Sequence record: MK773491.1
Direction: 5' to 3' (one strand)
Length of the DNA: 64,000 nt
Shown here one piece after another: positions 1,014 through 64,000 of this stretch. The notes under the pieces are model-generated. The model did no database searches. It was not told the DNA's origin and worked only from the letters and a program-made list of their open reading frames with translations. A program made the position numbers and the translations under genes. How positions within the stretch are numbered: position 1 is the first letter of the stretch; the number at the start of each line of letters is the position of its first letter.

Positions 1014-1427
1014 ATTATCCCCCTATAATTATCATTATATCATATTTACCCATATATATACCCTTTTTAATATATTAGAAAACTCTATAGTACTACCATA
1101 TATACACCATATAAACGCATAGAAAGCCATAAGAGAAGACTTCTCCAATATTATACACAGGTGTAGCTCCTGTAGATAGCGGCTCTTAGACGCTTATCGA
1201 AAGGATTCAACACCTGTAAAAATACCCAATTGTTAATATGTACAGTACTTTTACTTTTAAAATTATTCAGGAAATAGTTACACATTGAACTATATTAGTA
1301 AGTACTAATGGAAGCTACTATTCAGTACTTACCCCCTTCCGCTATATCTTCTCTGTATAAGAAGATAGAAAAGTACTAAAAAGTACTACACACCTTTTTT
1401 ACAAAGTACCATTCAACCTTTTTCCCG

Positions 1428-1516
1428 AAAGTACTCCATCCTAAATCCCAATCCTAGAAATTTTGGAGTACCCTCCAACCTCCAGCTAAAATCTCAAAAG
1501 TACTCCATCCTAAATC
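1428..1516 (+). repeat. 20-bp direct repeat AAAGTACTCCATCCTAAATC (1428-1447, 1497-1516)
   Basis: Identical copies read directly in a non-coding region. Confidence 0.9.
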
Positions 1517-1827
1517 TGAATCAACAAAATGCTGGACAACCATTCAGTACTAAATTATAATGTTATTAGTGGGAATCTACCCTCGTATATATGATGCTGT
1601 ATATAATATCAGTACTGAACGAATTAACAGTATTAGTAGATATACCAGTACTGAAAATATTTTGAAAATAGTTGTTGACACCGTGGGGAGATTTTGACAT
1701 AATACACGGCATGGGAGATGTGGTGAGTTATCATCCTGACTTCTGTATTGTTTATGAAAATAGATTGGAACAGTACTAACACGTTTATAACAACGTAACA
1801 GTACTGATATGAAGTGAAAAGTATTAC

Positions 1828-1847
1828 CCACCAGCTTAAGCTGGTGG
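1828..1847. other. Perfect 20-bp palindrome of two back-to-back Chi sites (CCACCAGC-TTAA-GCTGGTGG)
   Basis: Exact match to enterobacterial Chi GCTGGTGG on both strands. Confidence 0.9.
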
Positions 1848-2037
1848 ATGTGGTTAGAATAATAAGAAGGGGAAATCCCCAATCATACGATGAACTATAT
1901 TCAATTCTACCAGTACTGCGAATAGTTACTCCACAAGAATGAGAAGACTGTTGTAGTACTGAACTTTTTATGACGAGAAAATTTGAATAGATTTTGGGTG
2001 TACTTATCCTGTACTCTGGACGGATTAAGGGCGTGTT

Positions 2038-2140
2038 TGATTCTCATTCGCATATAAGAATGATAAACTTTCTCAACATGAGAATGGTTCTCAGTTGCAA
2101 ATAAGAATAGTTCTCAAATGAGAATAATAATGATTATCGT
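2038..2140. promoter_or_regulatory. Array of Fur-box-like hexamer repeats
   Basis: TGATTCTCATTCGCAT, ATGAGAATGGTTCTCA, ATAAGAATAGTTCTCAAATGAGAATAATAATGATTATCG resemble GATAATGATAATCATTATC. Confidence 0.55.
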
Positions 2141-2237
2141 TTTCAGTACTAGACTAATTTTTCCATTGGCTAGCCTACCGCGACGGAATATAATATTCCG
2201 GCAGTATCACGAATCAGCTTGTTTTAAATCTGCCGTT

Positions 2238-2266
2238 ATTATCTCAATATCTGGGTAGAATGTCAA
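2238..2266 (-). promoter_or_regulatory. Leftward sigma70 promoter TTGACA-17-GATAAT with no downstream ORF
   Basis: Near-consensus hexamers, 17-bp spacer. Confidence 0.65.
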
Positions 2267-2290
2267 GCTAATATTTTAAAAAATAAATGC

Positions 2291-2490
2291 TTGACACGTT
2301 GGCAGTACTTTGCTATTATATACACATAGCAAGAACAATGCTCAAGCCCACAGGGTGCGGAGGTGTATTCGTTAAAAGCTAAATGCGAATGATTATCATT
2401 TCGCTCATATGATACATTTCCGCACCCTCTAGGGTCTCCGCTTTCTCGCGTCTATGTAGTAATTATACGGTAATGCGGTTTATGCGTCAA
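2291..2490. ncRNA. Convergent promoter pair enclosing two inverted RCCC-N-GGGTGC motifs and a central Fur-like palindrome
   Basis: + TTGACA(2291)-17-TATTAT; - TTGACG(2490)-17-TATAAT; motifs 2346-2358 and 2422-2435; AATGATTATCATT 2388-2400. Confidence 0.55.
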
Positions 2491-2640
2491 GTACTTTTTT
2501 AAAGAAAATCGAAAATAATTTAGTACTATATGTATATAAGGAAGGAAAAAGAATTTTCAAAAAGTACTTGCATTCTAATTTCACCTATTGCATAATAGCT
2601 ACATCGAAACGAGATACACAAACACATTAAGGAAAACGAT

Positions 2641-2874
2641 ATGATTCGCATTGTTCGCATTAATTACTCTACCGGTGAAGCTGATAAAGTAGCGGTTATT
2701 GTATCAGAAAAGAATGATGATCATCTACACAATACGCTGATGCGTTTTGTTAGTGCGGTTGACCGTTGGGCTAGTATTGAGTACTTAGAAACGTTTAAAG
2801 TCCCTGCCGTCCAGCTTAACGGGCATGATATTAAAGCAATTTGGAATGCTGACGAAATGATCGCGAACATGTAA
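2641..2874 (+). CDS. Hypothetical early protein
   Basis: Own promoter, AAGGA RBS. Confidence 0.85.
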   Translation: MIRIVRINYSTGEADKVAVIVSEKNDDHLHNTLMRFVSAVDRWASIEYLETFKVPAVQLNGHDIKAIWNADEMIANM

Positions 2875-2965
2875 TTATTTCAAGTACTATCAAAATTTAC
2901 TTGACTTACTTTGATAGTACTTTATAATACTTACATACAAACGAAGTACTATTAAGGAAAGCATT

Positions 2966-3097
2966 ATGATCACTATCGAGAAAATCCGTTTAGCAGTAGA
3001 AGAACTGATCGCGGCTGGCTGGATTGTCGCAGAAAGTGAAGAAGAAATTAACATTGTAGTAAATGGTATGTATTCAGTTATGACAAACGTGGAGTAA
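2966..3097 (+). CDS. Small hypothetical protein (43 aa, MITIEKIRLAVEEL)
   Basis: Promoter cassette and AAGGAA RBS; below ORF-track cutoff. Confidence 0.75.
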   Translation: MITIEKIRLAVEELIAAGWIVAESEEEINIVVNGMYSVMTNVE

Positions 3098-3179
3098 GTT
3101 AGTATTAAAAGTACTTGCATTTACTTAGCGAGTACTTTATAATACTTACATACAAACGAAACACTATTAAGGAAATATC

Positions 3180-3797
3180 ATGGAAAACATCATCGACGTT
3201 ATCAAGTCTGTTTCTTATGCTGATCTGAATGAAGAACAAAAAGAAAAAGCTATTGAGATCATGCGAGAGTTAGAAAATCAAGAAATGACTCCGTTTTGGT
3301 CTGTAGATATTACTGATCAATGGAAAGAAACTTTAGACACTGAATACGGCATTACTGATGCAGTGATTTATTGGTCTGGTTTTTGTTCACAAGGTGACGG
3401 TGCATCGATTAGTACTGAATACTATATTGATATTGAGAAGTTTTTACGTAAATGTAAAGCGTGGTCAAAATTCCGTGTACTGCACAAAATTATTGACCGT
3501 GAAGAAATTCATGCTAAGATTGAACGTAGCTCAAGCCGTTACAATCATGAAAACACTGTAAGCGGTAGCGTAGAGCTTGATTATAACATTGATTGGACGG
3601 CGAAGCAGGAAAGCGAAGCTGAACGCTTAGAAGAATTTTTGACCGAAACTATTCGCGAACTTTCTTGTAAGCTGTATAAAGAACTTGATAATGAGAATGA
3701 TTATCAAAACAGCGATGATGCTCTTTGGTCTACCATTGAAGCAAATGAATATGATTTTGCTGTAAACTCAAACGGCGACGTTTTGCGTATCGCCTAA
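3180..3797 (+). CDS. Acidic phage protein with WSGFCSQGDGAS motif
   Basis: Promoter cassette, RBS; motif recalled from phage/plasmid hypothetical proteins. Confidence 0.85.
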   Translation: MENIIDVIKSVSYADLNEEQKEKAIEIMRELENQEMTPFWSVDITDQWKETLDTEYGITDAVIYWSGFCSQGDGASISTEYYIDIEKFLRKCKAWSKFRVLHKIIDREEIHAKIERSSSRYNHENTVSGSVELDYNIDWTAKQESEAERLEEFLTETIRELSCKLYKELDNENDYQNSDDALWSTIEANEYDFAVNSNGDVLRIA

Positions 3798-3902
3798 AGT
3801 ACTGACATACTGTAAAACGCTCTATAACGCATTGTAGGGCGTTTTAAGGAATAGCAGTATCATTTATCATCTTAATTAATTAAACGGCGTAGACGGCGAT
3901 TT

Positions 3903-4073
3903 ATGAGCAAACAAGATATATTGAAAGGGGATGTTTTATACTGGTTAGATCCTGATGATGGGATCTGTTCTGGATGGGTAACAGTATTAGACGTTAATAC
4001 TACAGTACTGGTAAAAGGTGCAACGGCAGAATTTGAAGTGCTACCCGAAGAACTTTATTCGCATGAAGTTTAA
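3903..4073 (+). CDS. Small hypothetical protein (56 aa)
   Basis: MSKQDILKGDVLYWLDPDDG...; ends at the next promoter cassette. Confidence 0.7.
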   Translation: MSKQDILKGDVLYWLDPDDGICSGWVTVLDVNTTVLVKGATAEFEVLPEELYSHEV

Positions 4074-4157
4074 AAAGTACTTGCAAAGTAAATCTAAAAG
4101 CGTATAATGATTTGCATAGGGGGAAACATCTTCCCCCCACTATTAAGAGAAACGATT

Positions 4158-4598
4158 ATGACTATCTACTATCTGACTTATAAAACCGCCGACAATGTAA
4201 CTGATGCTAATGTGACCGCAAACACGGTACAGGAAGCAATGGAAGTACTGAAAGCGGAACTACCTGATATTCAGATCGTTTGTGTAGTTGATACCGAAAC
4301 GAATCTTAAAACTATTATTGACCACTATGATTATTTCCGTGGGCGTAAGTTACAGGACTGGTATCATATCGAAATAGAAACACGTGAACTACCAGAAGAA
4401 CAACAGCACTTTGAGCAGGGTACTAGCATTTGGGTTACTACCGATAAACGCATATATTTCTGTTCACGCATACACGTTAACAAGCGTGTTAAAATTGGGG
4501 CAGATTCATATAGTGGACTGTTTACAAATAGTAACCTACTAAATGACAAGTACATAAAAGTTTATGAGCGTTTTGGAACTGATATTTACGCTTCATAA
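4158..4598 (+). CDS. Hypothetical early protein
   Basis: Start moved to ATG 4158 after the leader hairpin and RBS. Confidence 0.8.
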   Translation: MTIYYLTYKTADNVTDANVTANTVQEAMEVLKAELPDIQIVCVVDTETNLKTIIDHYDYFRGRKLQDWYHIEIETRELPEEQQHFEQGTSIWVTTDKRIYFCSRIHVNKRVKIGADSYSGLFTNSNLLNDKYIKVYERFGTDIYAS

Positions 4599-4602
4599 TA
4601 TC

Positions 4603-4729
4603 ACAAAGGGGAAGCAATTGCTTCCCTGTTTATTTGTACAGTACTATAATCTATAGATACAATACCGCACCCCGTGGGCTAATGTGTTTTCATGGGTATT
4701 ATTATGCCAGTACTACAAACATTTGTCAA
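4603..4729 (-). ncRNA. Candidate ~95-nt sRNA: TTGACA-17-CATAAT promoter, GCCCACGGGGTGC motif, intrinsic terminator
   Basis: Promoter 4729-4701, motif 4667-4679, bidirectional hairpin 4607-4627; near-duplicate at 13171-13297. Confidence 0.6.
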
Positions 4730-5127
4730 TCATTATTTTCAATTAATTTAAACGCACTGTAACACTGTATAAGGCGTTTTGTTATTAAGGTAAGCAAACG
4801 TATTGAGTACTATCTAAAAGGCCGTTGTGGGCTTGCTGGTGGCGTTGTGTTGTAGTATTGAAATATAAGGAAAATATAAAAAAGGCTGTCAATGATTAAA
4901 AAAGTACTTGACGGATTGATTTAGTACTGTCATAATGTATCACATAGAGCGGCGGGATGGATAAACATTCCTAAGTAGACAGCCAGTAAGTCATACGAAA
5001 GACTGGTGCCGAACTGAAAGAAAGATTGAAAAGAGTTTTAAAAAGTACTTGACAAGCTGGTGGGAAATTGAGATAATGACCCCGTAGACAGCAAACAACC
5101 TAATTAAACTTTAAGAGGAAATATACA

Positions 5128-5715
5128 ATGACTACTACTACTGAAAATGCACGTGTTACCCTGAAATCTGCACTGGAAGCTGGCGACGTTAAAACCCTTG
5201 CTGTTATCCTTGCGAAAGTTGGTCATGATAAAGACGGCGTATCTAAATTGGGCTTGACTTTCTCACTGGCGGTTAAGGAAGCGAAGGAAGTACTTAAAGA
5301 GCAAGCCAAAGCAGCAGAAGAAGCTGCACGTCAGGCAGCAGAACGCCGCGAAGCTAAAAAGGCTGCACGTCAAGCCGAAGAAGAAAAGCGTCAGGCTGAG
5401 ATCAAGGCAGAAAAAGAAAATATGCTCAAGTTCCTCATGGATACGGTTAACGGTATGGGCTTAGACCTTGAGGCGGCAGAAGCGGCAGCAGAAGCGGCAA
5501 TTGTTAAAAAGTACGGCGATGTTAACAAAGTACCTAAGTATACTTTTAACCGTGTAGCGGTGATTGTAGACGGTAAAGAATACAACATGCCAACTTCTGG
5601 GAACATGGTAGAAGTACTTAAAAATGCACTTGAAGCAAGCGGTAAATCGCGTAAAGAGTTTATCATCGAACACGCGAAAGACAAGGCAGAAGCGGAAGCG
5701 GCATTCGCTGAATAA
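5128..5715 (+). CDS. H-NS-like protein (coiled coil plus H-NS-like C-terminal domain)
   Basis: PKYTF...G..VEVLKNALEASGKSRKEFII resembles H-NS PAKYSY...[23 protein letters not shown]; Ala/Glu/Lys helical linker. Confidence 0.5.
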   Translation: MTTTTENARVTLKSALEAGDVKTLAVILAKVGHDKDGVSKLGLTFSLAVKEAKEVLKEQAKAAEEAARQAAERREAKKAARQAEEEKRQAEIKAEKENMLKFLMDTVNGMGLDLEAAEAAAEAAIVKKYGDVNKVPKYTFNRVAVIVDGKEYNMPTSGNMVEVLKNALEASGKSRKEFIIEHAKDKAEAEAAFAE

Positions 5716-5732
5716 TAACAGTACTAAACTAT

Positions 5733-5759
5733 AGGCGGCCTAAGTGGTCGCCTTTTTTT
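5733..5759 (+). terminator. Intrinsic terminator
   Basis: AGGCGGCC-TAAGT-GGTCGCC-T7. Confidence 0.85.
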
Positions 5760-5773
5760 AATTGGGGGATTAT

Positions 5774-6034
5774 ATGGCTGTAGGATTCGCGAAAGACGGG
5801 GCAGAACAAGACGAGATTTTAGCGGTCATAAACGCCGCTGTAAGCCACGCAAGGAATCAGATAGGGGATAGTACTATTACAAGTAGAACGCACTGCCTAG
5901 ACTGTTCTAGGACTATTCCTGAGCGTAGACGGGAAGTAGTAAAGGGTGTTAAGTACTGCGTAGAGTGTCAGGCTGATCATGATAGTATATTTAAAAGAGA
6001 TCCGCGTAATTGTTGGCACAGATCTATGAGATAG
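5774..6034 (+). CDS. TraR/DksA C4-type zinc finger protein (YbiI-like)
   Basis: MAVGFAKDGAEQDEI...CLDC..IPERRR...GVKYCVECQ; GGGGGA RBS before 5774. Confidence 0.9.
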   Translation: MAVGFAKDGAEQDEILAVINAAVSHARNQIGDSTITSRTHCLDCSRTIPERRREVVKGVKYCVECQADHDSIFKRDPRNCWHRSMR

Positions 6035-6115
6035 TACTTGACATACTTTCTGATTAAAGTATAATGATTTGCATAGAGGGAAACATCTTCCTTCACTAAT
6101 TAAGGAAATAGAATC

Positions 6116-6388
6116 ATGCGTACACCAATGACCCGCGAAGAAATACACACAGTACTGACAACTAACATTCAGGACTGGAAGAAATACGCAGATATTAACG
6201 AAGCTCAAGACTTGAACAATGAGCTAGATGGTGAAGATCTGGACGTAATTTGTTCCCCTGAGTTTTATGATGATATTCATTCCGATGATGATGTTTGGAA
6301 TGTACTGGAAAAGCATTTCCTCGATACTGATTTAAGTATCTACTCGCGTGATACTTTTATTTTAATTCACAACATTTATAACAAATAA
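6116..6388 (+). CDS. Hypothetical early protein
   Basis: Promoter/hairpin cassette, RBS. Confidence 0.85.
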   Translation: MRTPMTREEIHTVLTTNIQDWKKYADINEAQDLNNELDGEDLDVICSPEFYDDIHSDDDVWNVLEKHFLDTDLSIYSRDTFILIHNIYNK

Positions 6389-6467
6389 TTGTTGACTTAC
6401 TTATATAGTACTGTATAATGGTTTGCATAGGGGGAAACATCTTCCCCCATCAATTAAGGAAAAGAAA

Positions 6468-6677
6468 ATGACTCGATACACTGTAGAAGTACGTACTACT
6501 AAAAACATTGCTACTGATGTGATTCGTTATTATAAGATGGTTTGTGGTGTTGCTCGCCGTATTAGTAAAGCGGATTATGACAAGCTGGATCGCGAAGCTG
6601 ATGGTATGGATTGTTTTTATACAGTAAACACAAAAACGCATACAAAGCAATTTAAAACATTGTCTTATTACATGTAA
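6468..6677 (+). CDS. Hypothetical early protein
   Basis: Start moved to ATG 6468 after AAGGA RBS. Confidence 0.85.
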   Translation: MTRYTVEVRTTKNIATDVIRYYKMVCGVARRISKADYDKLDREADGMDCFYTVNTKTHTKQFKTLSYYM

Positions 6678-6760
6678 AAAGTTTTACTCCAGTACTTGAC
6701 AATAGATGCGAGTACTGGCATAATAACTTTATTGAAACGAAATACTATTAAGGAAATATC

Positions 6761-7150
6761 ATGGCTAATCTCATTGTTCGATTGTATGAAGATTGTTTCT
6801 ACTTTGAGTATTGTGGGAAACCTATATCCGTTAAAGAGATGATCGCATCGGGCTATATGTTATCTAAGCATGATCACACTGGATTCATGGCTGAAATGAT
6901 TGCGGCTAGTTATAAGTTTGGTGAAGAATGGGAAGCACAATATTTTCCGGCTGTCAATGCAATGATTAAGCGGTTGGCAGAACACACTGAGTTTATGGAA
7001 TTTTGGACTGTTTTAAAAATGGTTGACGTGAATCAGAATGGGGAAACGTGTCAGCCATACGCACATTTTGACGCTGGGGAAGATATTAGCACAATTTGGA
7101 AATGGTTGGAAGATAAATTTACAACAATTAAAATTGCAGATTACTTGTAA
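6761..7150 (+). CDS. Hypothetical early protein
   Basis: Promoter, RBS. Confidence 0.85.
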   Translation: MANLIVRLYEDCFYFEYCGKPISVKEMIASGYMLSKHDHTGFMAEMIAASYKFGEEWEAQYFPAVNAMIKRLAEHTEFMEFWTVLKMVDVNQNGETCQPYAHFDAGEDISTIWKWLEDKFTTIKIADYL

Positions 7151-7234
7151 AAGTACTTGCATTACTATCTGAAAAGCGTATAATGGTTTGCATAGGGGGA
7201 AACATCTTCCCCCACTAATTAAGAGAAGAATATC

Positions 7235-7615
7235 ATGGCTAATCAAATCACTCCAGCACAGACCTTCAATAAATTCAGTACTGAAATCGTATTGAAAGAG
7301 TATGTGCCAGATTATGGTTGGACTGATGCATGTGTATGCACTGATGTAGCAGATGCAAAGCAACGCATTAAAGATTATCGTGCGGAGGGTTTACAGGTTA
7401 AAACTGCCCGTCGCCGTGTACTTAACAAAGATGCTTTCTTATGTCAAGCTCTTTTAAACTTCTGCCGTGACTACTATCGCCGTACTGGTGGATTATGGCC
7501 TAATGAGGTTGAAGTACTGAAATCTAACGGTAAAGTAAAATTTACCTTGACTTTAAAAGAAATTGAGGAAGTACTTGGTGATGATTGTTTTTTAGTAACT
7601 TCACAGCCAGCATAA
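7235..7615 (+). CDS. Hypothetical early protein
   Basis: Promoter/hairpin cassette, RBS. Confidence 0.85.
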   Translation: MANQITPAQTFNKFSTEIVLKEYVPDYGWTDACVCTDVADAKQRIKDYRAEGLQVKTARRRVLNKDAFLCQALLNFCRDYYRRTGGLWPNEVEVLKSNGKVKFTLTLKEIEEVLGDDCFLVTSQPA

Positions 7616-7684
7616 AAAAGTACTTGACACATAACGGGGATATGATACAATATCCCCATATTGAAAAGTAATGGAAGTACTGAA

Positions 7685-7876
7685 ATGAATTATCAAAAGG
7701 TTAGCAAGCGAGTAGTTGAACTCTCTAAGAAAGCACGTAAAGAGTATACCTTAGAACGTTCAATTAACAACTATCATTTAAAGCAAGGTGATAAGTTTAT
7801 TGTTATTGACGAACCTTTGGAAATCGTGTATATTGTAGTTAATGCGATGATTCGTGATAAAACGAGGATTAAGTAA
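7685..7876 (+). CDS. Hypothetical early protein
   Basis: Promoter TTGACA 7624; ATG start. Confidence 0.7.
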   Translation: MNYQKVSKRVVELSKKARKEYTLERSINNYHLKQGDKFIVIDEPLEIVYIVVNAMIRDKTRIK

Positions 7877-8131
7877 ATGCGTACATTAGACCAACTTATT
7901 GACCCTAATACGTCAGCACGTCGATCAATGGTTACTATCGGCGGTAATGGTAAACAACACTGGAGTGGTTACATTTGCTTTATTGTTGGTGGAAAAATGT
8001 ATGAGCGGGTAGTATATCACAAAGAGATTAATTATATACTATTCCGTAAAGAAGTCATAGCAGTCGATCCTACCGCCCTAAAACCGATTGCAGGGGCATG
8101 GAACAAAGAATCGCTGTACCTTACAGCTTAA
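7877..8131 (+). CDS. Hypothetical protein
   Basis: GAGGA RBS; abuts the upstream stop. Confidence 0.8.
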   Translation: MRTLDQLIDPNTSARRSMVTIGGNGKQHWSGYICFIVGGKMYERVVYHKEINYILFRKEVIAVDPTALKPIAGAWNKESLYLTA

Positions 8132-8180
8132 CCAATAAAAGGCCGCTACGTGCGGCCTATCGCGTTCTAGAGGGTATATT

Positions 8181-8363
8181 ATGAATACTGTACAAGTACT
8201 AGATGAGATTGAAAAAATTGTTGACAGTACTAACAAACGTGATATACTGTTATCAAGAAATGAGGCTAACCAGTACGAAAAGAATTGCGTACAATCGGTA
8301 AAAGGGGGCATCTTTGAATCGTTACACACAGCCATACTTCAAGGGAATCACAACTGTTCCTGA
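8181..8363 (+). CDS. Hypothetical protein
   Basis: GAGGG RBS. Confidence 0.65.
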   Translation: MNTVQVLDEIEKIVDSTNKRDILLSRNEANQYEKNCVQSVKGGIFESLHTAILQGNHNCS

Positions 8364-8567
8364 GCGTAAAAAGAAACTACGCACAGCACCGAAACGAAAG
8401 CGTAAAGTACTTAAACTTAAACCAACGTATGGTTGGGGATTGTCGTGGGATGAAATCAATCACGGCCTATCATGGAATCAATTATATGTTATTGGCTCAA
8501 GTGTTGGTCGCTTTCATTTTAGTACTATATCACGACACGAAACACGTGTAAACCCATATAAAAGTAC

Positions 8568-8752
8568 TTGACATGCATCCGGCTTAGTGAGATAATACTT
8601 ACAAGCCGGAGAAATGGCGTGACCCAGCGGGTGCGAAGAAGTAATAAGTACTTGAGAATGATAATCATTTACGATACTAGACAGATTTATGCACCCGATG
8701 GGTTAGATTGTTTTCATGTGTATATAATATCAAAGTACTATTATAGTGTCAA
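8568..8752. ncRNA. Second convergent promoter pair with inverted ACCC-N3-GGGTGC motifs and a central Fur-like box
   Basis: + TTGACA(8568)-17-GATAAT; - TTGACA(8752)-17-TATTAT; motifs 8622-8634 and 8691-8704; TGAGAATGATAATCATTT 8653-8670. Confidence 0.6.
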
Positions 8753-8844
8753 GCATTTTTATTTGATAATTATTTTAAAAAAGTCTTGCATTACTTTCTG
8801 AATAACGTATAATACTTACATCAACCACTAAGAGGAAAGAAACA

Positions 8845-9216
8845 ATGTCTATTAAGCGTATTGTATTTGGTCGCGGTGCAAGTGAAGAAGTAGTACCTGT
8901 TGAACTGATCGCGATGTTAAATGAAATGATTCGCCGTGGTGATATTAATTTTAGTCCTGATGTAATGCCTTATGCGATTTCGTATGAGGTGCGGAAAACT
9001 CCGAAGTACTGGAAGATTGACCGTGTGGAACTGGACAAAGAAACTGGTGCGATTCGCGAGTTTGGGCGTAGTTCTGTTGGTGCTGTAGACTTTGAAGGAA
9101 ACGTGTTTAAGTCTGCAAGTTATAAAGCAGTTGCAAAGGGTATCCGTGGAAACATCTTTGTTCACAATGGTTTTAGTGCAATTACTGGTGATGGATATAT
9201 TCGTTATTTAAATTAA
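8845..9216 (+). CDS. Conserved phage hypothetical protein (VFKSASYKAVAKGIRGNI)
   Basis: Promoter, GAGGA RBS. Confidence 0.85.
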   Translation: MSIKRIVFGRGASEEVVPVELIAMLNEMIRRGDINFSPDVMPYAISYEVRKTPKYWKIDRVELDKETGAIREFGRSSVGAVDFEGNVFKSASYKAVAKGIRGNIFVHNGFSAITGDGYIRYLN

Positions 9217-9304
9217 AAAGTACTTGCAAAGTAATCTGATTGGCGTATAATGTTTTACATAGAGAGGGGGAAATAGTTTCCCCTCCAAATTAAGGAAAAG
9301 TATC

Positions 9305-9541
9305 ATGGCACAGAAAATCACTCGCGAAAACGTAGAATTTTACATTGGTATCCTGAATGCTAAACTTGAACAAATGGATGCCCCGCTGCGTTACAAAATG
9401 ATCCCTGTTGCTGGTGGTTATGAGTTGCAAAAGTACAAAGGCGATATTCAGGTTGATTATTGCGTATCAGGTCAAAAACTCCGTGAAGTTTATGAGATTG
9501 TACGCTTTGCCGCCAATATGATTTCGGATAATATGAAGTAA
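9305..9541 (+). CDS. Hypothetical early protein
   Basis: Promoter/hairpin cassette, RBS. Confidence 0.85.
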   Translation: MAQKITRENVEFYIGILNAKLEQMDAPLRYKMIPVAGGYELQKYKGDIQVDYCVSGQKLREVYEIVRFAANMISDNMK

Positions 9542-9615
9542 TTATTATCAAAAGTACTTTACAAGTACAGTAGAGTACTTTATAATACTTACATCAATTA
9601 AGCAAGGGGAAACAT

Positions 9616-9789
9616 ATGATTGGTATTTTTGTTTGGGTAGCGACAATTATTATCGGTTTCATTGGTTTTATCTGGAGTCGTGATGATTTGTTTAATACAT
9701 TGATTAAATTTATACTATATGCTGTGTGGTTTTTTGGTGTTATTATTCTGTATCAACAAAATGGTTTTTCTGGTATTCCTTTGAAGTAA
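9616..9789 (+). CDS. Small two-TM membrane protein (57 aa)
   Basis: MIGIFVWVATIIIGFIGFIW...LYAVWFFGVIILY; cassette promoter, RBS. Confidence 0.8.
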   Translation: MIGIFVWVATIIIGFIGFIWSRDDLFNTLIKFILYAVWFFGVIILYQQNGFSGIPLK

Positions 9790-9868
9790 TTATTATCAAA
9801 AGTACTCTTGACAATACTTTGAGAGTACTTTATAATACTTACATCAATTAAGCAAAGAGGAAAACAAA

Positions 9869-10174
9869 ATGCAAATGTCTAACCTGTATGTAGCTCACAT
9901 CACTATGCGTCATGGCGAATATGAAACACTGGTTAAGCGATTGATTATTGCTAAGAGTTTAGCAGAGGCAGAATTATACGCCTATGAAGAAGGGATGGCA
10001 ACATTTGACGGTAGCGAATTAGAAGATAAATCCAGCTATCAAGAATCGGATCAGCCTCATACGTGGTACTTCTCAGGCGGTGATTGGTGCGTTACTCTTA
10101 ATGCTGTTACATGGATTGAGGATCGCGAAACAGCTAAAGTAATTGCTAAATCTGATTTACTGTCTTATCTGTAA
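9869..10174 (+). CDS. Hypothetical early protein
   Basis: Cassette promoter, GAGGA RBS. Confidence 0.85.
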   Translation: MQMSNLYVAHITMRHGEYETLVKRLIIAKSLAEAELYAYEEGMATFDGSELEDKSSYQESDQPHTWYFSGGDWCVTLNAVTWIEDRETAKVIAKSDLLSYL

Positions 10175-10242
10175 AAGTACTTGACAACCTTTCGGGGGGT
10201 AGGATATACTATCCCCATCAATTAAGCAAAGAGAGAAACAAA

Positions 10243-10476
10243 ATGATTAAAGAAATTACTACCGCCCCGATTGAAGTACAGAAAGCATTTGAACATGTGC
10301 GTTCTTTCTTCCCTACTGTTAATCGCGTGTTGTACGATGAAGATTGTAGCTGGACATATATGGATGCATTCGGTGCTGCTCCTTCATTTGATGGTCACGA
10401 TGTTGATCAGGCAATTTTAGAGGCTGCTGCTGATGCTCAGTATAACGTCGCCGTACCAGTAGCATATAAGGCGTAA
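10243..10476 (+). CDS. Hypothetical early protein
   Basis: Promoter, RBS. Confidence 0.85.
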   Translation: MIKEITTAPIEVQKAFEHVRSFFPTVNRVLYDEDCSWTYMDAFGAAPSFDGHDVDQAILEAAADAQYNVAVPVAYKA

Positions 10477-10553
10477 TTATTATCAAAAGTACTTTACAAA
10501 TACAGTAGAGTACTTTATAATACTTACATCAATTAAGCAAAGAGAGAAACAAA

Positions 10554-10964
10554 ATGTTTAAAATTACTAGCGTAGAAAAAAGCGGCGATTCCATGATTGT
10601 AAGTGCTTTCTGGAATGATGCTTGTAAAGTATCTATTAGCTTTAATCAAATGGGCGTAGTACAATCCTGTACTTTCGCAGAGGATACCAAAGAGCGAGCA
10701 CAATTAGAAGATCATGCACGTGCGGTAATTAAATTCAATATTCCTATTGAAATGGAACCGCATATCATCTATACTGATGATCAGGTCGAGCAAATGAAAC
10801 GTTGGTATGAATCTTTGATTAAAGCGGAAAAGACCATTGCCGAAATGGATCAATGCATCGTTGAAGCCGATTGGTTATCTGATATGTTCGGGCAAACATC
10901 TGGTAGCATTATTGATGCCCTGTTTAATGTTCGTTCGGCGTTAGATCCACGCATCAATCAATAA
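10554..10964 (+). CDS. Hypothetical early protein
   Basis: Cassette promoter, RBS. Confidence 0.85.
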   Translation: MFKITSVEKSGDSMIVSAFWNDACKVSISFNQMGVVQSCTFAEDTKERAQLEDHARAVIKFNIPIEMEPHIIYTDDQVEQMKRWYESLIKAEKTIAEMDQCIVEADWLSDMFGQTSGSIIDALFNVRSALDPRINQ

Positions 10965-10967
10965 AGA

Positions 10968-11070
10968 AAAAAGGGGTTGACTTCGGTCGCCCCTTTTGTT
11001 ATTATATAGTCATTGGCAGATAAGCTACTAACCCATAGGGTGCGATAGTCTGTCTGTAGTATTTTAGTAC
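10968..11070 (+). ncRNA. Terminator/promoter fusion followed by TAACCCATAGGGTGC motif, no ORF
   Basis: TTGACT 10977 inside a UUCG hairpin, TATTAT 11000, motif 11029-11043. Confidence 0.5.
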
Positions 11071-11140
11071 TTAAAAAAGTACTTGCTTTTGTGTGCTGGT
11101 GGTGTATAATACTTGTATTGAAACAAACGAGGGTCAAACA

Positions 11141-11308
11141 ATGGAAAAAGAATTCGATTCTAGTGATTATGAATGTGCTCTTGATTATGCTTTCCATATT
11201 GAGCAAACGCAGCAGCGAACCGAAACAGAAGCTATTATGTTAGCGGCAAAGTACTATAATATTAATTGGCAATCATTGCAACGTTATGCGGATTCATTTA
11301 ATATCTAA
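11141..11308 (+). CDS. Small hypothetical protein
   Basis: Start moved to ATG 11141 after GAGGG. Confidence 0.8.
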   Translation: MEKEFDSSDYECALDYAFHIEQTQQRTETEAIMLAAKYYNINWQSLQRYADSFNI

Positions 11309-11373
11309 AAAGTACTTGCATTACTTTCTGATTAACGTATAATGTACTTATTGAAACAAACGAGGGTAGAGAG

Positions 11374-11625
11374 ATGGAAGATTTCAAAATTGTAAAACAA
11401 TTCTCATTGGCACAAAAAGATAATCAGTACTTTTGTACTATTTCACGTCGAGAAACACCGGAAACCGAAACTGGGTTAACATGGGAAGTTCTGACGCAGA
11501 CTAACACTGAAAAGCCAGTACTTGAAACTTTCGAACGTTATTCTATCGCAGAAATGGCTTTTAAAAACTATGTTATTACTTCATTGAATACTGATCATTT
11601 TTATCAGTACTCAGCAGAAAAGTAG
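11374..11625 (+). CDS. Hypothetical early protein
   Basis: Promoter, RBS. Confidence 0.85.
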   Translation: MEDFKIVKQFSLAQKDNQYFCTISRRETPETETGLTWEVLTQTNTEKPVLETFERYSIAEMAFKNYVITSLNTDHFYQYSAEK

Positions 11626-11702
11626 TTGACTTACTTTCTAATTAACGTATAATGGTTTGCATAGGGGGAAACAACTTCCCCCACTAATTAAGGAAATGAA
11701 TT

Positions 11703-12167
11703 ATGAATAGCATCCAGTTCGTAGAAGCCATTGAAAAAGAATTCCTGTCAGTATTCCCTAACGGTTTCTTTATTGCCCGACCTTTACCGTTAGGTGGTGA
11801 TGTAGGGATCACTATGGGACTGACTCGCGAACAGGCCGATTGCCCTCATAATATCCGTGATAATGATCGTATGCGTATGACCTTCGCGATCCACGGTATG
11901 AAGTTTGGTGATAGTGAAGATTATAACGATAAGTTAATCATGGAACCGTACTATTCAGCGATTAGCACGATTCCACGCAAGCCATATTACGCTATGGGAC
12001 ACGATAAGATAAAGACACGTAAAACCACTAACACGCCTGAAAAATTGCTGGTAACGCTTTCTAAGTACATTAAAACGGCAGGACAGCAAGTAAAAGAGCT
12101 AGCAGAAGTAAGCGAGATTTATCAGCAGGAACAGATTAAACCTCAGTACTTAGAAATTAACGTGTAA
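11703..12167 (+). CDS. Hypothetical early protein
   Basis: Hairpin cassette, RBS. Confidence 0.85.
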   Translation: MNSIQFVEAIEKEFLSVFPNGFFIARPLPLGGDVGITMGLTREQADCPHNIRDNDRMRMTFAIHGMKFGDSEDYNDKLIMEPYYSAISTIPRKPYYAMGHDKIKTRKTTNTPEKLLVTLSKYIKTAGQQVKELAEVSEIYQQEQIKPQYLEINV

Positions 12168-12244
12168 TTATTATCAAAAGTACTTTACAAGTATAGTAGA
12201 GTACTTTATAATACTTACATCAATTAAGAAAAGAGGATTACAAA

Positions 12245-12469
12245 ATGGCGGCTAAAACTTTTGAACAGTTAAAATGGGTTGCTGGTCAAATCACTGATGA
12301 TCTGATGTATTCCCGAATGAATGAAGCAGTACTGAAAACTGTTTTCAATCGCCGTACTAAATCTACTGAAATGGCTACCCTATGCGGCCTTGTATGTGCT
12401 AGTGCTATGGAGCGTAAAATTAATACAGAAGTAATTGAGCGTTATTTACGCAACGTACATACTGAGTAA
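12245..12469 (+). CDS. Hypothetical early protein
   Basis: Cassette promoter, GAGGA RBS. Confidence 0.85.
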   Translation: MAAKTFEQLKWVAGQITDDLMYSRMNEAVLKTVFNRRTKSTEMATLCGLVCASAMERKINTEVIERYLRNVHTE

Positions 12470-12546
12470 TTATTATCAAAAGTACTTGCAAATCGAATGC
12501 GAGTACTTTATAATACTTACATCAATTAAGCAACGGGGTTTATATC

Positions 12547-12777
12547 ATGGATAATCGTGAAATCATCGCTCAAGTACTGACACGTATTTTAATGTCAACT
12601 CGACTTTCTCAGGTACGCAACATTACAGCAGCACATGAAAATACATGGCGTGAAGCCTTAAATGGTAGCAATGCAAGCCAGCTAGCGGCTGATGATAAGC
12701 TGAAAGAAGTTATCAAGTCTGCTATGGCGGAACTGAATGATGATGCTGTAGAATATGTTTTAAATTCTTTCAAATAG
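12547..12777 (+). CDS. Hypothetical early protein
   Basis: Cassette promoter, RBS. Confidence 0.85.
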   Translation: MDNREIIAQVLTRILMSTRLSQVRNITAAHENTWREALNGSNASQLAADDKLKEVIKSAMAELNDDAVEYVLNSFK

Positions 12778-12858
12778 TACTTGCATTACTTATCCAGTAC
12801 TGTATAATGGTTTGCATAGGGGGAAACAACTTCCCCCACTAATTAAGGAAATGAAAAA

Positions 12859-13167
12859 ATGATTGCTAACGTTCAAGCCAACTTTGAAAACCAATTCATC
12901 AATGAAATGTTGCGACTTGATGATGGGGTCGCCCGTATTAACTACGGTTTTAACTCCGGTGGTTATGAAAGTAACGTGTACTTTTATACTGCTGATGGTG
13001 GTACACTGGCAATCGATACGGTCATTGTCGAAATACAAAAAGTAAACTTCAATGATGAAAATGATCCGCAGTGGTATATCATCGGCTATGACGTGAACTA
13101 TGAAGATCAAGATCTTTATGACTCACATACCGGACAGCAAATCATTCCCGCTTATGGGGATGAATAA
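12859..13167 (+). CDS. Acidic hypothetical protein
   Basis: Hairpin cassette, RBS. Confidence 0.85.
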   Translation: MIANVQANFENQFINEMLRLDDGVARINYGFNSGGYESNVYFYTADGGTLAIDTVIVEIQKVNFNDENDPQWYIIGYDVNYEDQDLYDSHTGQQIIPAYGDE

Positions 13168-13170
13168 TAA

Positions 13171-13297
13171 CACAAAGGGGAGCTAACACTCCCCTGTTTA
13201 TTTGTACAGTACTAAAACATATAGATACAATTCCGCACCCTGTGGGTTAGCTTGTTTTCATGACAATAATTATACTAAAAAGCTGGTGGTGTGTCAA
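13171..13297 (-). ncRNA. Candidate ~95-nt sRNA, paralog of the 4603-4729 unit
   Basis: TTGACA(13297)-17-TATAAT(13274); TAACCCACAGGGTGCGG; terminator hairpin near 13175-13195. Confidence 0.6.
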
Positions 13298-13383
13298 GCA
13301 TTTATTTTATAAAAAAAAGTACTTGCATTCTTTCAGTACTGTAGTATAATACTTGTATTGAAACGAGATAAGGGAAACACAAA

Positions 13384-13923
13384 ATGATTACACAAATCTA
13401 TCACGGCAGCACCCGTTTTGATACTGCTGGTGGATATAAAGGCGGCAAACCTAACAGCTTTCAACATGGCGTAGGTCTGTATTGTACTAATGCTTACTTA
13501 TGGGCTGAAAAGTACGGTCGAAGTGTTTACGTGTTAGATGTTGAACTAAAACCAGAACATCACGCCGACAATGTAGAAATTACAATTGAAAACTTGCAAT
13601 ATTGGGTTAACTGCTATTGCTCGCAGAAAGTAGCAAAGATCTTTAAAAAGGAATTTAGCCAACGCGAGACTATGACCGCACATCGCTTTGAATTATGGCT
13701 GTACTGGAATGTAAGACGCTTTAAGCCTATAGCAGTACAATTAGCCGCTTTCTTTACTGCTCAAGGCGTAACGCATAATAGCGAGGTTGGTAATTATGGC
13801 GGTAAACTCATTCGTATATATGACTTTGATATTATCAAAGGTTATACAAAGGATAAAGAAGTACTACAGAAGTTAAACTACAATAATACGGAATTACCGG
13901 ATTATCTAAAAGAAAAAGTTTGA
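13384..13923 (+). CDS. Putative ADP-ribosyltransferase-fold protein
   Basis: N-terminal IYHGST and G-x-G-L-Y-C-T motifs typical of H-Y-type ART folds. Confidence 0.5.
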   Translation: MITQIYHGSTRFDTAGGYKGGKPNSFQHGVGLYCTNAYLWAEKYGRSVYVLDVELKPEHHADNVEITIENLQYWVNCYCSQKVAKIFKKEFSQRETMTAHRFELWLYWNVRRFKPIAVQLAAFFTAQGVTHNSEVGNYGGKLIRIYDFDIIKGYTKDKEVLQKLNYNNTELPDYLKEKV

Positions 13924-13980
13924 CAGTACTAAGGGAGTGTTATATAATACTCCCATGTTAAGCAAACGAGGAATTACAAA

Positions 13981-14205: not shown

Positions 14206-14351
14206 AAAAAGAATACATCATCCGAGTACAAATGAAAGGCGGTGCACAACGTACTTTTCGTGAATGGGGTTGGTCTGCTGGTATGGCCTTTGAACAGCTT
14301 AAAAAAGATAATCCCGATGTGCAATACAAAATAGAATCAAAAGAGGCGTAA
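14202..14351 (+). CDS. Small hypothetical protein (49 aa)
   Basis: ATGA coupling; stop is the TAA of the next cassette. Confidence 0.75.
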   Translation: MKKEYIIRVQMKGGAQRTFREWGWSAGMAFEQLKKDNPDVQYKIESKEA

Positions 14352-15824: not shown

Positions 15825-15864
15825 CCGAAAGGGGGAGCAATCCCCCAAACTTTTAAGAGGATTT

Positions 15865-60846: not shown

Positions 60847-60855
60847 GAGATAGTC

Positions 60856-61647
60856 ATGAAATTTGTAGTCTTTTCAGATATACATGGTGGAAGTAATTAT
60901 CTTCACGATGATGATTATACTGATACCGTACTAATAATTGCTGGGGACTACGATGAGACTAAGCGTAGTCGTTACCGTGAAGGAATTGAACAGCATTGTA
61001 AACAATTCAAGAAAGTAATACTAGTCCCCGGTAATCATGAGTACTATGGTTCAAATATACATAAAACACATAAAGTACTACAAGAGATGGATGATGAAAT
61101 ATCTAATTTTATCTTTCTCCAGAATAATTATGTATGGATTGACGATGTACTAATTATTGGTAGTACTTTGTGGACAGACTTTGACAGGGGTAATCCTCTA
61201 GTGAAGTTTGATGCCAAAATGAAGATGAATGATTATAAACACATTCGTCACGGGCCAGAAAGTGAACCTTGGCGTAAGAAACTCACGGTTGAAGACGTTG
61301 AGTTCATGCACCACGTTTCTAAAAAATATATAAAAGAAACGGTTGACATGGAACGAAATTTGGTTCATAATGATTTCAAGATTGTGGTGGTAACACATCA
61401 CGCCCCAAGTTATCAAAGTGTGTCTCCAAGATATAACAATGATTCATTGAATGGTTGTTACTGTTCAGATATGGATCAATACATTGAAGAACTCCAAGCT
61501 GACGTGTGGATTCATGGACACGTGCACAGCAATTTTGATTATCAAATTGGTAAAACCCGTATCATTTGCAATCCAAAAGGATATGAATCTTTTTCTGGAG
61601 CAAATGAAAACTTTGATTACAGTCCTAAATTTATTTTTGAAGTATAA
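60856..61647 (+). CDS. Calcineurin-like metallophosphoesterase
   Basis: SDIHG, AGD, PGNHEYY, THHAP, HGHVH. Confidence 0.9.
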   Translation: MKFVVFSDIHGGSNYLHDDDYTDTVLIIAGDYDETKRSRYREGIEQHCKQFKKVILVPGNHEYYGSNIHKTHKVLQEMDDEISNFIFLQNNYVWIDDVLIIGSTLWTDFDRGNPLVKFDAKMKMNDYKHIRHGPESEPWRKKLTVEDVEFMHHVSKKYIKETVDMERNLVHNDFKIVVVTHHAPSYQSVSPRYNNDSLNGCYCSDMDQYIEELQADVWIHGHVHSNFDYQIGKTRIICNPKGYESFSGANENFDYSPKFIFEV

Positions 61648-61662
61648 AAGAGGAATGAGAAT

Positions 61663-62340
61663 ATGAATAACAACATTATTGCAGCACCTTCCAACCTATC
61701 TGTTCCAATGGTAATTGAGCGTAGTAATGGTACAGAACGTGCTTATGATCTAGGTTCTCGTCTACTCCAAGACCGTGTTATCATGCTAGACGCTGGGTTT
61801 GATGACAGCATGGCACATATTGTAAAACAGTCCCTACTATGGCTAGAATCCCAAAGTAATGATCCTATCACACTTTATATCACCTCACCCGGTGGTTCAG
61901 TACACGCAGGTCTAGGGATTGCTGATATTGTATCTTGTATGCGTACTCCAATTCGTACAGTAGTTCTAGGTATGGCTGCTTCTATGGGTTGCTACATGCA
62001 AAGTACTATGGGTACTCCCGGAATGCGTCTAGCTGGTAAACGTGCTCAAATTATGGCACACCAAGTATCATCTGGTACACAAGGTACACTAGCTGACCAG
62101 AAAATCTCACTAGCACACAGCGAACTACTAGATGAAATGCTAGCACGTGAAATCGCAGAAGCTGTAGGGGTATCCTATGAACAGTACAAACTAGATACTG
62201 CTCGTGATATGTGGATGACTGCTGAACAAGCACTAAACTATGGTGAGAAGGGTTTCATTGATGGTATTATCATCGGTGATAAGAACGAAGATGGTAAACT
62301 ACTTGTTAAACGCCGTGGCGGTGTTGAGGAATGGGTATAA
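61663..62340 (+). CDS. clpP: ATP-dependent Clp protease proteolytic subunit
   Basis: SRLLQDRVIML, YITSPGGSV, GMAASMG (Ser), MAHQ (His), RDMWM (Asp). Confidence 0.95.
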   Translation: MNNNIIAAPSNLSVPMVIERSNGTERAYDLGSRLLQDRVIMLDAGFDDSMAHIVKQSLLWLESQSNDPITLYITSPGGSVHAGLGIADIVSCMRTPIRTVVLGMAASMGCYMQSTMGTPGMRLAGKRAQIMAHQVSSGTQGTLADQKISLAHSELLDEMLAREIAEAVGVSYEQYKLDTARDMWMTAEQALNYGEKGFIDGIIIGDKNEDGKLLVKRRGGVEEWV

Positions 62341-62633
62341 TGGACAAACTACTAGTGCGGGGCGTAAATGCCCCACAAGATGCAGAAGTTGTCAGTACTG
62401 AAGAGTTTATTACTCTAGCATTTGATCAAATTTCTGCAATTAGCTTGGATCTATCTTTTAGTAAAGAAAGCGGTGAAGTACTAGAAGGTATGAGTGATAT
62501 GCTTGAACTAATGAAAGCAATTCTTATCGCTAAGAACATCAATCCTATCAATTTATTTGTTACAGCAGAAAAACTACGTTCTGAAGAAGGAACTTTTTCA
62601 GACAAGAAAGCAGTACAACAGGAGCAAGAGTAA
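62340..62633 (+). CDS. Hypothetical protein
   Basis: TAATG coupling to clpP. Confidence 0.8.
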   Translation: MDKLLVRGVNAPQDAEVVSTEEFITLAFDQISAISLDLSFSKESGEVLEGMSDMLELMKAILIAKNINPINLFVTAEKLRSEEGTFSDKKAVQQEQE

Positions 62634-63076
62634 TGAGTACTAATCAGCAATACAAAGAAGGTTATCAATATTTCAAAGAAAACGGTGCAATGGATCTAGA
62701 TCTACTAAAACAACGTAGTCCTCTATTCCGTAGTGGTTACCGTAGTGCACAAGAAGAAGCTGCTAAGAAAAACAATGGCACCTTCCCAACTACGCTATAT
62801 GATATTCCTCGTCGTCCAGAAAACTTTGTTCCTACTTGGAATGATATTCTAGCAGCAACTCGTCGTCCACGTATGCGTAAGCTACACGCAGATCATATGA
62901 TTCCTCTACTAAATCTACTCATTCGTGAAGTAGAAAAGAATTGTGCTGACGTTACTCGCTATTCTGATGTACTTAAAAAAGTTGACACAGCTTTCGATAT
63001 CATGCTACAATATGGCTATGATGAAGGCATTCTAGACGAACGTGACCTAAAGCAATACGATTACGTTCCTAAGTAA
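62633..63076 (+). CDS. Hypothetical protein
   Basis: TAATG coupling; downstream terminator. Confidence 0.8.
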   Translation: MSTNQQYKEGYQYFKENGAMDLDLLKQRSPLFRSGYRSAQEEAAKKNNGTFPTTLYDIPRRPENFVPTWNDILAATRRPRMRKLHADHMIPLLNLLIREVEKNCADVTRYSDVLKKVDTAFDIMLQYGYDEGILDERDLKQYDYVPK

Positions 63077-63120
63077 ACACAAAAGGCCGCTTCATGCGGC
63101 CTATATTGTTCGAGGTGAAT

Positions 63121-63642
63121 ATGAAACTTAAAGTCTTTACAATGGAAGAAACTAAACAATTAATTGATGACCTGAATAAGTACTGGAAACTTTGTGCTGA
63201 AGTTACTAGTATTGCAAGGTTCCGTATTACTGAGGGTTTTGAATCTCATGTTCGTGATTACAAATGGGATTGGCGTTCGCCATTCACTCGCCGTGTTAAG
63301 TCTGTTGAAGATATGACTTATAAGATTTGTGGTGGACAGTTTCGTAGTACGTATTATGAATTCATGGAAAGTAAGGGATTTTCCGAATACCTTTCTTGCT
63401 GGTTTGGTGATTCAGATCCAAAATATTATTTTGTCCAAAAGCCATACAATGATATTGTAGAGGCTGCGGCACGTATTGGTTATTGGAAACAAGAACATAT
63501 TGCAACATTCCACGAATTACTAGAATTGTATGCTGAACATCCTCTAGTGCCGGAAGATAAAGATATTGAAATTATCAAGACTGTTCGTTCCCGTCTTGAA
63601 ATTCTTGAACACATGATGGAAGAATATAATAATGCAATATAA
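63121..63642 (+). CDS. Hypothetical protein
   Basis: Start moved to ATG 63121 after GAGGTG. Confidence 0.8.
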   Translation: MKLKVFTMEETKQLIDDLNKYWKLCAEVTSIARFRITEGFESHVRDYKWDWRSPFTRRVKSVEDMTYKICGGQFRSTYYEFMESKGFSEYLSCWFGDSDPKYYFVQKPYNDIVEAAARIGYWKQEHIATFHELLELYAEHPLVPEDKDIEIIKTVRSRLEILEHMMEEYNNAI

Positions 63643-64000
63643 TTTAACAGAAGAACAAAGTACTAAATTCTATGAAGAATTGGTAGATGCAATCGAAACA
63701 ATCGATACTCTAAATGAACTTGCTATTGATACATTCAATAATTGGCATATTCAATACTTGGCTAATCACAAAAGTATTTTTGGATTTAAACCTTATAGTA
63801 TTGAAAAGTTCGGTAAGAAGATTACAATCGGTAAGGGTATTGAAATTGGTCAAAATCAAAAAAGACGTGTAATCTATAATGCTGATGGTTGGGGTGCTAA
63901 TCTCCGTACTACAAAGATTGCCAAACTAACCGGACGTTCATTCTTGGATGTATTGGGTGAAGTCAATCTAGTAAGTGCTGCATGTACATCATTTGTTTAT
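63632..64000 (+). CDS. Partial hypothetical protein (runs off right edge)
   Basis: MQYNLTEEQSTKFYEEL..., open to the window end. Confidence 0.7.
   Translation, partial: MQYNLTEEQSTKFYEELVDAIETIDTLNELAIDTFNNWHIQYLANHKSIFGFKPYSIEKFGKKITIGKGIEIGQNQKRRVIYNADGWGANLRTTKIAKLTGRSFLDVLGEVNLVSAACTSFVY

Follow-up and report, generated by a model that had tools for sequence, protein, structure and literature searches.

AGTACT, a highly iterated palindrome of RaK2-like jumbo phages and a candidate genome-wide recognition word

Introduction

The palindrome AGTACT is strongly over-represented in a 64,000-nucleotide stretch of DNA from sequence record MK773491.1 (the window, meaning the whole of that stretch), which corresponds with 100% identity to bases 62001-126000 of Salmonella phage 7t3. 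This phage is a RaK2-like jumbo myovirus with a record of 348,718 bp, and is 98.5-99.8% identical to phages SE_PL, fENko-Kae01, PHA46 and Munch. The excess of AGTACT is independent of coding, the word is conserved and occupies fixed places in early promoters, and its enrichment is restricted to the RaK2-like clade and one prophage family. An excess beyond compositional bias, combined with selection and promoter placement, points to a factor that reads duplex DNA. It is proposed here, with a probability of about 0.4, that AGTACT serves RaK2-like jumbo phages as a recognition word throughout the genome, selected on the DNA itself and read on the duplex by a symmetric (dimeric), lineage-specific factor.

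If AGTACT is read by a protein or an enzyme, an undescribed recognition system operating genome-wide would exist throughout a clade of phages with genomes of 350 kb, some of them candidates for therapy against Klebsiella, E. coli, Salmonella and Erwinia; no paper linking AGTACT to RaK2-like phages was found in the literature. Such a system would shape the proteins and early promoters of these phages, and probably also when early genes are transcribed or how incoming DNA is protected, and would be a phage counterpart of the cyanobacterial palindrome HIP1, the function of which has remained unsettled for 30 years. The word also provides a simple sequence marker for the RaK2-like clade and for the unrelated prophage family.

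Abundance and distribution of AGTACT

The window contains 254 AGTACT sites dispersed over positions 1-64000, compared with 18.6 ± 4.0 (largest value, 30) in 100 dinucleotide-preserving shuffles, and AGTACT is the commonest of all 4096 hexamers in it, with an observed to expected ratio of 13.7. The whole 7t3 genome carries 853 copies versus 145 of the reversed control word, and the flanks of the sites hold almost no information beyond the hexamer. A preliminary description of this DNA had reported frequent copies in both coding and non-coding DNA and 15 of them in 1085-1965; sites do occur in both classes of DNA, and the count is exact (positions 1089 to 1955).

The density of AGTACT in the window is 3.2 per kb in coding and 9.5 per kb in intergenic DNA, and 12 per kb in the intergenic DNA of positions 1-22 kb. 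Over coding and intergenic DNA together it amounts to about 6 per kb in 1-22 kb and 2.5-3 per kb beyond, a doubling that coincides with the terminal repeat. The direct terminal repeat and early region is predicted at about 1345-21080 (plus strand) by homology with fENko-Kae01 and with the start of the Munch record: fENko-Kae01 (99.3% identical to 7t3) has a PhageTerm-defined direct terminal repeat of 19.7 kb (340370-360105), the start of which is equivalent to window position 1345 and to base 1 of Munch. Window 1345-21080 holds short early genes, sigma70-like promoters and the doubled AGTACT density, and we presume that it enters the cell ahead of all other phage DNA. Because the 7t3 record was deposited in permuted form, the physical end of the genome falls within the window. 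The densest cluster of sites (1085-1965; 15 sites in 880 bp, mostly non-coding) straddles the left boundary of the repeat and spans the physical genome end, because the repeat begins near 1345; it includes a 55-nt direct repeat bearing AGTACT (1423-1477 and 1492-1546). Two stretches of 2.4-2.5 kb just past the repeat (21715-24223 and 25844-28262) are free of the word. Outside the repeat the genome-wide density is even, 1.2-3 per kb over all gene classes, late and structural genes included.

Within genes lie 178 of the 254 sites (70%), and all three codon phases are used (55/42/72). A synonymous-codon shuffle that kept the proteins and the codon usage of each gene predicted 46 ± 6 sites where 170 were observed, and 50-59% of the synonymous opportunities to write AGTACT are realised in each frame. 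The encoded dipeptides are also skewed relative to their reversed orders (Ser-Thr, 1.62 times; Val-Leu, 1.78 times). Codon or dinucleotide bias, which the preliminary description had named as the explanation that would undo its claim, thus fails to account for the excess in either the shuffles or the synonymous controls; surviving coding-aware controls and skewing dipeptides, the excess is therefore a feature at the DNA level strong enough to bend protein sequences.

Words one step away from AGTACT are not depleted (observed/expected, 0.8-3.4). Variants at the outer positions are enriched (AGTACA, 3.4 times; CGTACT, 3.0 times) above the inner ones (0.8-1.6 times), and those that retain an intact GTAC core are 2-3 fold enriched. 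Owing to this graded excess of near-sites with an intact core, a binding protein fits better than an all-or-none enzyme site.

AGTACT in early promoters

The preliminary description had further held that AGTACT is built into the early promoters, and quoted several fused strings; these are present in the sequence, and two fixed positions of the word in sigma70-type early promoters were found in 7t3 and in phages GAP32 and CBB. Promoter-like sites were collected by a simple search for -35 and -10 elements in window 1-22 kb for 7t3 and in the early regions of the other two phages. Among 44 such sites of 7t3, AGTACT starts at -5 from the -35 hexamer, AGTAC being fused to its first T, in 15, and at +15/+16, ending 1-2 bases before the -10 element, in 12; both copies are present in 10. 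The corresponding figures are 14/54 and 8/54 in GAP32, and 17/47 and 13/47 in CBB. The early-region spacers of GAP32 and CBB cannot be aligned with those of 7t3, yet they show the same two peaks. In promoter coordinates the copies occupy -40/-35 and about -20/-14, and, being 20-21 bp apart, they therefore lie on one face of the helix.

A two-site promoter at 9553-9586 (plus strand) illustrates the arrangement: AGTAC abuts the -35 element (9558-9563), and a single base separates the second AGTACT (9574-9579) from the -10 element (9581-9586), with a spacer of 17. Others on the plus strand are found at 6691-6728 (AGTACT at 6691 and 6711 flanking TTGACA, followed by the -10 element), at 4903-4940 (AGTACT at 4903 and 4923) and at 12179-12216 (AGTACT at 12179 and 12200), the last being a cassette with near-identical versions at 10488, 14363, 9801, 14677 and 12481. 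The promoter at 7152-7190 (plus strand) has the upstream site only, AGTAC being fused to TTGCAT, and is followed by a conserved G5/C5 leader hairpin. The early promoters may resemble the A1 promoter of phage T7.

Such a G5-loop-C5 hairpin is conserved in the leaders that follow many early promoters (4119, 6430, 7195, 9266, 11664, 12819 and 21124), just 5' of the common ribosome-site context AATTAAGGA; it may serve as a structural element of the leader or as a site of processing.

In the mechanism proposed, AGTACT would mark phage DNA about once every 250-400 bp, most densely on the terminal repeat. Of the promoter copies, one would overlap the upstream edge of the -35 element and the second would lie two helical turns downstream, just before the -10 element, so that a factor bound there may compete with RNA polymerase, for example in shutting off early transcription.

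The fixed positions, the high conservation of the word there and the A-tract that precedes the upstream copy could also be taken to mean that AGTACT is a mere promoter or UP-element feature of strong early promoters, with the remainder due to compositional bias. This is very improbable: the coding-aware controls contradict it, the 178 intragenic sites stand in all frames, far from promoters and at 11 times the chance level, and the word is thus not restricted to promoters. Moreover, late and structural regions maintain 1.2-3 sites per kb, prophage sites lie off promoters and several early promoters lack the word.

Occurrence in related and other phages

The signature extends across the RaK2-like phages. 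Observed versus expected counts are 115 vs 11.5 in A4 (Asteriusvirus), 119 vs 12 in RaK2, 253 vs 13.8 in GAP32 and 266 vs 15 in CBB, a 10-18 fold excess accompanied in all four by a complete lack of GCGC; Erwinia phage pEa_SNUABM_12 has 1078 copies against 154 of the reversed control word, and Yersinia phage fHe-Yen9-03 has 1012 against 136. The other large myoviruses tested do the opposite and avoid AGTACT (copies against control word: PVP-SE1, 1 and 48; Vibrio phage K566, 0 and 129; PA5oct, 15 and 40; the T4-like ECO4, 31 and 59; SKML-39, 24 and 65). This purge in other enteric and Vibrio myoviruses suggests that AGTACT may be a real restriction target in these hosts.

Palindromic hexamers in general are avoided, as the preliminary description had supposed for phages: 27 of the 64 are absent from the window, and 24-27 are missing in 7t3, nearly all with at least four G/C. 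The tetramer GCGC does not occur in the 348,718 bp of 7t3 (window, 0 versus 48 expected), and both its absence and the missing palindromes are common to 7t3, A4, RaK2, GAP32 and CBB. Over the 63 other palindromic hexamers, AGTACT being excluded, the profile of 7t3 correlates at 0.78 with those of other RaK2-like phages and at 0.44-0.60 with that of PVP-SE1, and shows no correlation with T4. The shared profiles therefore indicate a common restriction landscape that normally purges AGTACT; for this word alone, the RaK2-like clade has reversed the sign. TCGCGA is 3.7 times over-represented in 7t3, with the same pattern in A4, RaK2, GAP32 and CBB.

An unrelated prophage family

The same signature is present in a family of prophages found by scanning IMG/VR for the pattern and scoring the listed matches by density. 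Four proviruses (G001-G004) of 28-32 kb and about 37-42% G+C show a 9-15 fold AGTACT excess and no GCGC, and relatives reside in chromosomes of Leclercia, Phytobacter diazotrophicus and Enterobacter bugandensis. The family is siphovirus-like, with a large serine integrase and a LexA box before an early gene. AGTACT often lies within the octamer CAGTACTG, which makes up 37-40% of the sites in G001, G003 and the locus L150 and almost none in the E. bugandensis member. The signature ends at the junction between prophage and host, and in the E. bugandensis chromosome CAGTACTG is at the chance level (67 versus 52 for the reversed control word).

No third AGTACT-rich lineage appeared among the IMG/VR matches listed. 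The other AGTACT-dense loci were set aside: their density reflected Ser-Thr coding repeats in frame or unremarkable composition, or they were fragments of RaK2-like phages already known. At L062, L071, L074, L089, L035 and L086 the density comes from in-frame tandem Ser-Thr repeats, with periods divisible by 3; a plain density scan would confuse this distinct phenomenon with the AGTACT signature.

Similarity between the two lineages is limited in extent. Their palindrome-avoidance profiles correlate at 0.66-0.74. The prophage endolysin matches a baseplate-hub lysozyme family of the jumbo phages (7t3 record 232427-235642, outside the window; E 9e-40), and does so far better than generic endolysins do; a 223-aa homing-endonuclease-type DNA-binding protein of 7t3 (record 176811-177482, also outside the window) is 37% identical to a prophage gene. 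Several homing-endonuclease-type genes are present in the prophage family (loci L126/L127 of provirus G001 and L150-L153). The likeness of the lysozyme and endonuclease-type genes shows signs of possible gene exchange between jumbo phages and prophages. A further idea, quite unlikely in our estimation, is that AGTACT-rich, GCGC-free DNA is a 'self' label by which a jumbo-phage factor tells its own from host DNA, and that the prophages copied this label so as to have their own DNA spared or served during takeover of the cell by a jumbo phage.

Conservation and turnover

Selection on AGTACT is supported by its turnover. Between GAP32 and CBB (18% divergence over 39.6 kb aligned), 29.5% of AGTACT observations were changed, against 58.7% of all hexamers, which places AGTACT third of 64 frequent hexamers in conservation, ahead of TATAAT; the best-kept frequent hexamers are AGTACT itself and words that overlap it. 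For the prophages, losses on terminal branches of a four-genome alignment were compared with the expectation from per-base substitution rates: AGTACT was lost 13 times versus 52.8 expected (ratio 0.25, or about 4 times slower than predicted), whereas the ratio for all hexamers was 0.68 (about 1.5 times slower), and gains were not in excess (1 versus 2.6 expected). Between 7t3 and Munch, the rate of change of intergenic AGTACT was 0.22 times that of neighbouring hexamers. Where orthologues have 52-57% amino-acid identity, 20-28% of sites share the codon position, approximately what is expected if roughly half of the permitted contexts are used uniformly.

These data bear on a mutational or repair drive, such as a conversion of the very-short-patch type as proposed for HIP1, which would create functionless AGTACT. 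The similar saturation of all three frames (50-59%) would agree with a drive of this kind, as would the turnover of coding sites between 7t3 and Munch, which shows no clear slowing relative to control words. It is nevertheless improbable, given that AGTACT is lost 2-4 times more slowly than other hexamers in two lineages and that neither the depletion of one-off neighbours nor the excess of gains that characterize very-short-patch-type drive was seen. In addition, no recognisable replication genes were present among the annotated open reading frames (ORFs) of the prophages, which by inference are copied by host enzymes, yet the host chromosome is without the signature. Turnover, gains and enriched neighbours favour selection for a graded-affinity read-out over mutational drive.

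DNA modification and the Dam-family methylase

Another explanation is DNA modification: methyl or bulkier groups would be placed specifically on AGTACT, giving denser protection or an epigenetic switch of early promoters, and their writer would be a PF05869 methylase or some other enzyme of the phage. AGTACT is purged from other, unmodified enteric myoviruses along with the same other palindromes, so that about 850 copies would probably need protection, and cyanobacterial HIP1 has been linked to orphan methylases (PMC4390886). The preliminary description had put forward an adenine methyltransferase at 42408 as the candidate writer. Its identity was borne out, the gene at 42408-42938 (plus strand) encoding a PF05869 Dam-family N6-adenine methyltransferase (Pfam E 9e-29), and PF05869 is carried by all six RaK2-like lineages tested or annotated and is absent from PA5oct and K566. 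The role as writer was not, as the enzyme does not track the signature: its presence follows AGTACT within the jumbo clade, where the association is confounded by descent, and fails to do so in both directions outside it. PF05869 is absent from the four signature-bearing prophages, and no methyltransferase of any kind was recognised in the prophage ORFs scanned. The closest homologues outside the clade (44-45% identity) belong to phages in which AGTACT is not in excess or is depleted (AGTACT vs control: Acinetobacter phage Cato, 4 vs 19; Staphylococcus phage 92, 9 vs 8; Lactococcus 936-group phage, 0 vs 9). The clade's own enzymes are only 42-67% identical to each other, the Erwinia and Yersinia members, at 42-43% identity to that of 7t3, being no closer to it than the homologues outside the clade, and the neighbours that deamination would produce are not depleted (AGTATT, 1.67 times; AATACT, 1.30 times).

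A Dam methylase was thus rejected as a general writer, being absent from the prophages and having homologues in phages without the excess, and no cognate orphan methyltransferase of the HIP1 kind co-occurs with AGTACT. The 42408 enzyme is most likely an ordinary phage adenine methylase, and modification of AGTACT as a whole is regarded as rather unlikely.

The methylase adjoins a nucleotidyltransferase gene in A4, GAP32 and CBB. The pair that it forms with the following gene (42408-43467) is conserved across genera; this second gene gave no Pfam match, and is annotated as 'ribonucleotide reductase A' in 7t3 and as a cytidylyl- or nucleotidyltransferase in A4, GAP32 and CBB.

Search for a reader

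Every ORF of the prophage family was compared with all six frames of 7t3 by tblastn and with family profiles. The only shared matches were the lysozyme domain and the sporadic homing-endonuclease-type DNA-binding domain; the latter (221/223 aa) was rejected as a reader, since it is found in 1040 phage records and lacks conservation within the clade. A SegE-like GIY-YIG nuclease of 148 aa adjoins the lysozyme gene in all prophage members and is the only conserved DNA enzyme there; it was discarded as a common reader because PF01541 is absent from five RaK2-like genomes in a search with a working control. PF19835 was not found in RaK2-like genomes, and a homologue of RE_ScaI gave no match, in searches whose control remained silent. 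A virion protein encoded at 16677-17210 is of low complexity and not an evident DNA reader.

A word shared by two unrelated lineages, with no phage protein detected in common, would be explained if the reader belonged to the host, that is, if AGTACT acted on a protein or defence nuclease common to Enterobacterales by blocking, titrating or recruiting it, in the way that Chi acts on RecBCD. The correlated palindrome-avoidance profiles of the two lineages are compatible with this, and the phage already uses host-read Chi. The genome has 24 copies of the Chi octamer GCTGGTGG on its plus strand and 7 on its minus strand, whereas about 1 per strand is expected by our own estimate; the window has 15 plus-strand copies (range 1840-21601), 14 of them in the terminal-repeat and early region, and 2 minus-strand copies. 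Chi is here an oriented RecBCD signal concentrated on terminal-repeat DNA. A host reader is nonetheless unlikely, as other phages of the same hosts avoid AGTACT and the word is at the chance level in the host chromosome.

SlmA is, to our knowledge, the one host protein with AGTACT central in its site. The SlmA-binding sequence GTGAGTACTCAC spans 12 bp, with G, T, A and G strongly preferred at positions 1, 2, 4 and 5 (PMC3020112). The 348.7 kb of 7t3 contain 1 full site, and good half-flanks number 37 versus about 52 by chance; with the required flanks at or below chance, titration of SlmA or a role as nucleoid-occlusion sites was discarded.

A lineage-specific factor that reads AGTACT on the duplex remains the preferred explanation, and several observations weigh against it. 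No reader common to the jumbo clade and the prophages was detected by tblastn and profiles, and therefore the two lineages need analogous readers or share one that escaped detection. Several early promoters are without AGTACT, and RNA polymerase therefore does not need the word; in the prophages it is not tied to -35 elements. Between 7t3 and Munch, the rate of change of coding AGTACT was 0.65 times that of its neighbours, a value within the 0.5-1.2 spanned by control words; hence either the constraint per site in genes is weak or the test is underpowered. Helical phasing of AGTACT pairs is not obvious in the list of distances (no formal test was made), promoter pairs of 17-23 bp excepted.

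Other features of the window

An early gene at 5774-6034 encodes a DksA/TraR-type C4 zinc-finger protein (PF01258, E 3e-8) that may bind the secondary channel of host RNA polymerase. After the terminal repeat there are about 30 tightly packed or overlapping genes for products of 150-220 aa, almost without mutual BLASTP similarity, and the two AGTACT-free stretches fall among them; the run of similar-sized genes at 22-41 kb was considered as a paralogue family, and none was detectable.

Comparison with known systems

The closest parallel to AGTACT is HIP1 (GCGATCGC), the highly iterated palindrome of cyanobacteria (PMC4390886, PMC5861425). Both are short palindromes that are hyper-abundant genome-wide, in genes and spacers, under selection and with no agreed reader, and AGTACT shows the attributes of a highly iterated palindrome, namely genome-wide over-representation, an excess over coding-aware expectation and conservation above background. 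HIP1 is cellular, whereas AGTACT is a 6-bp AT-rich word of phage and prophage genomes with no cognate methylase common to all carriers. Unlike HIP1, it coexists with the purge of GCGC and other palindromes and has fixed positions in promoters.

Chi, KOPS and uptake sequences are likewise words enriched by selection, and a protein machine reads each of them. They are asymmetric and biased in orientation, in contrast to AGTACT, which is palindromic, about 35 times denser than Chi in this DNA and at the chance level in the host. The GATC/Dam/SeqA system of E. coli resembles AGTACT in having about one site per 250-400 bp and paired regulatory sites about two helical turns apart, and in 7t3 a Dam-family methylase is encoded nearby; the word, however, is not GATC and the methylase does not track the signature. 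The SlmA site shares AGTACT as its central hexamer, but its GT-purine flanks are not enriched in 7t3. Finally, the hexamer is identical to a ScaI-type restriction site, which is here enriched 9-18 fold rather than avoided.

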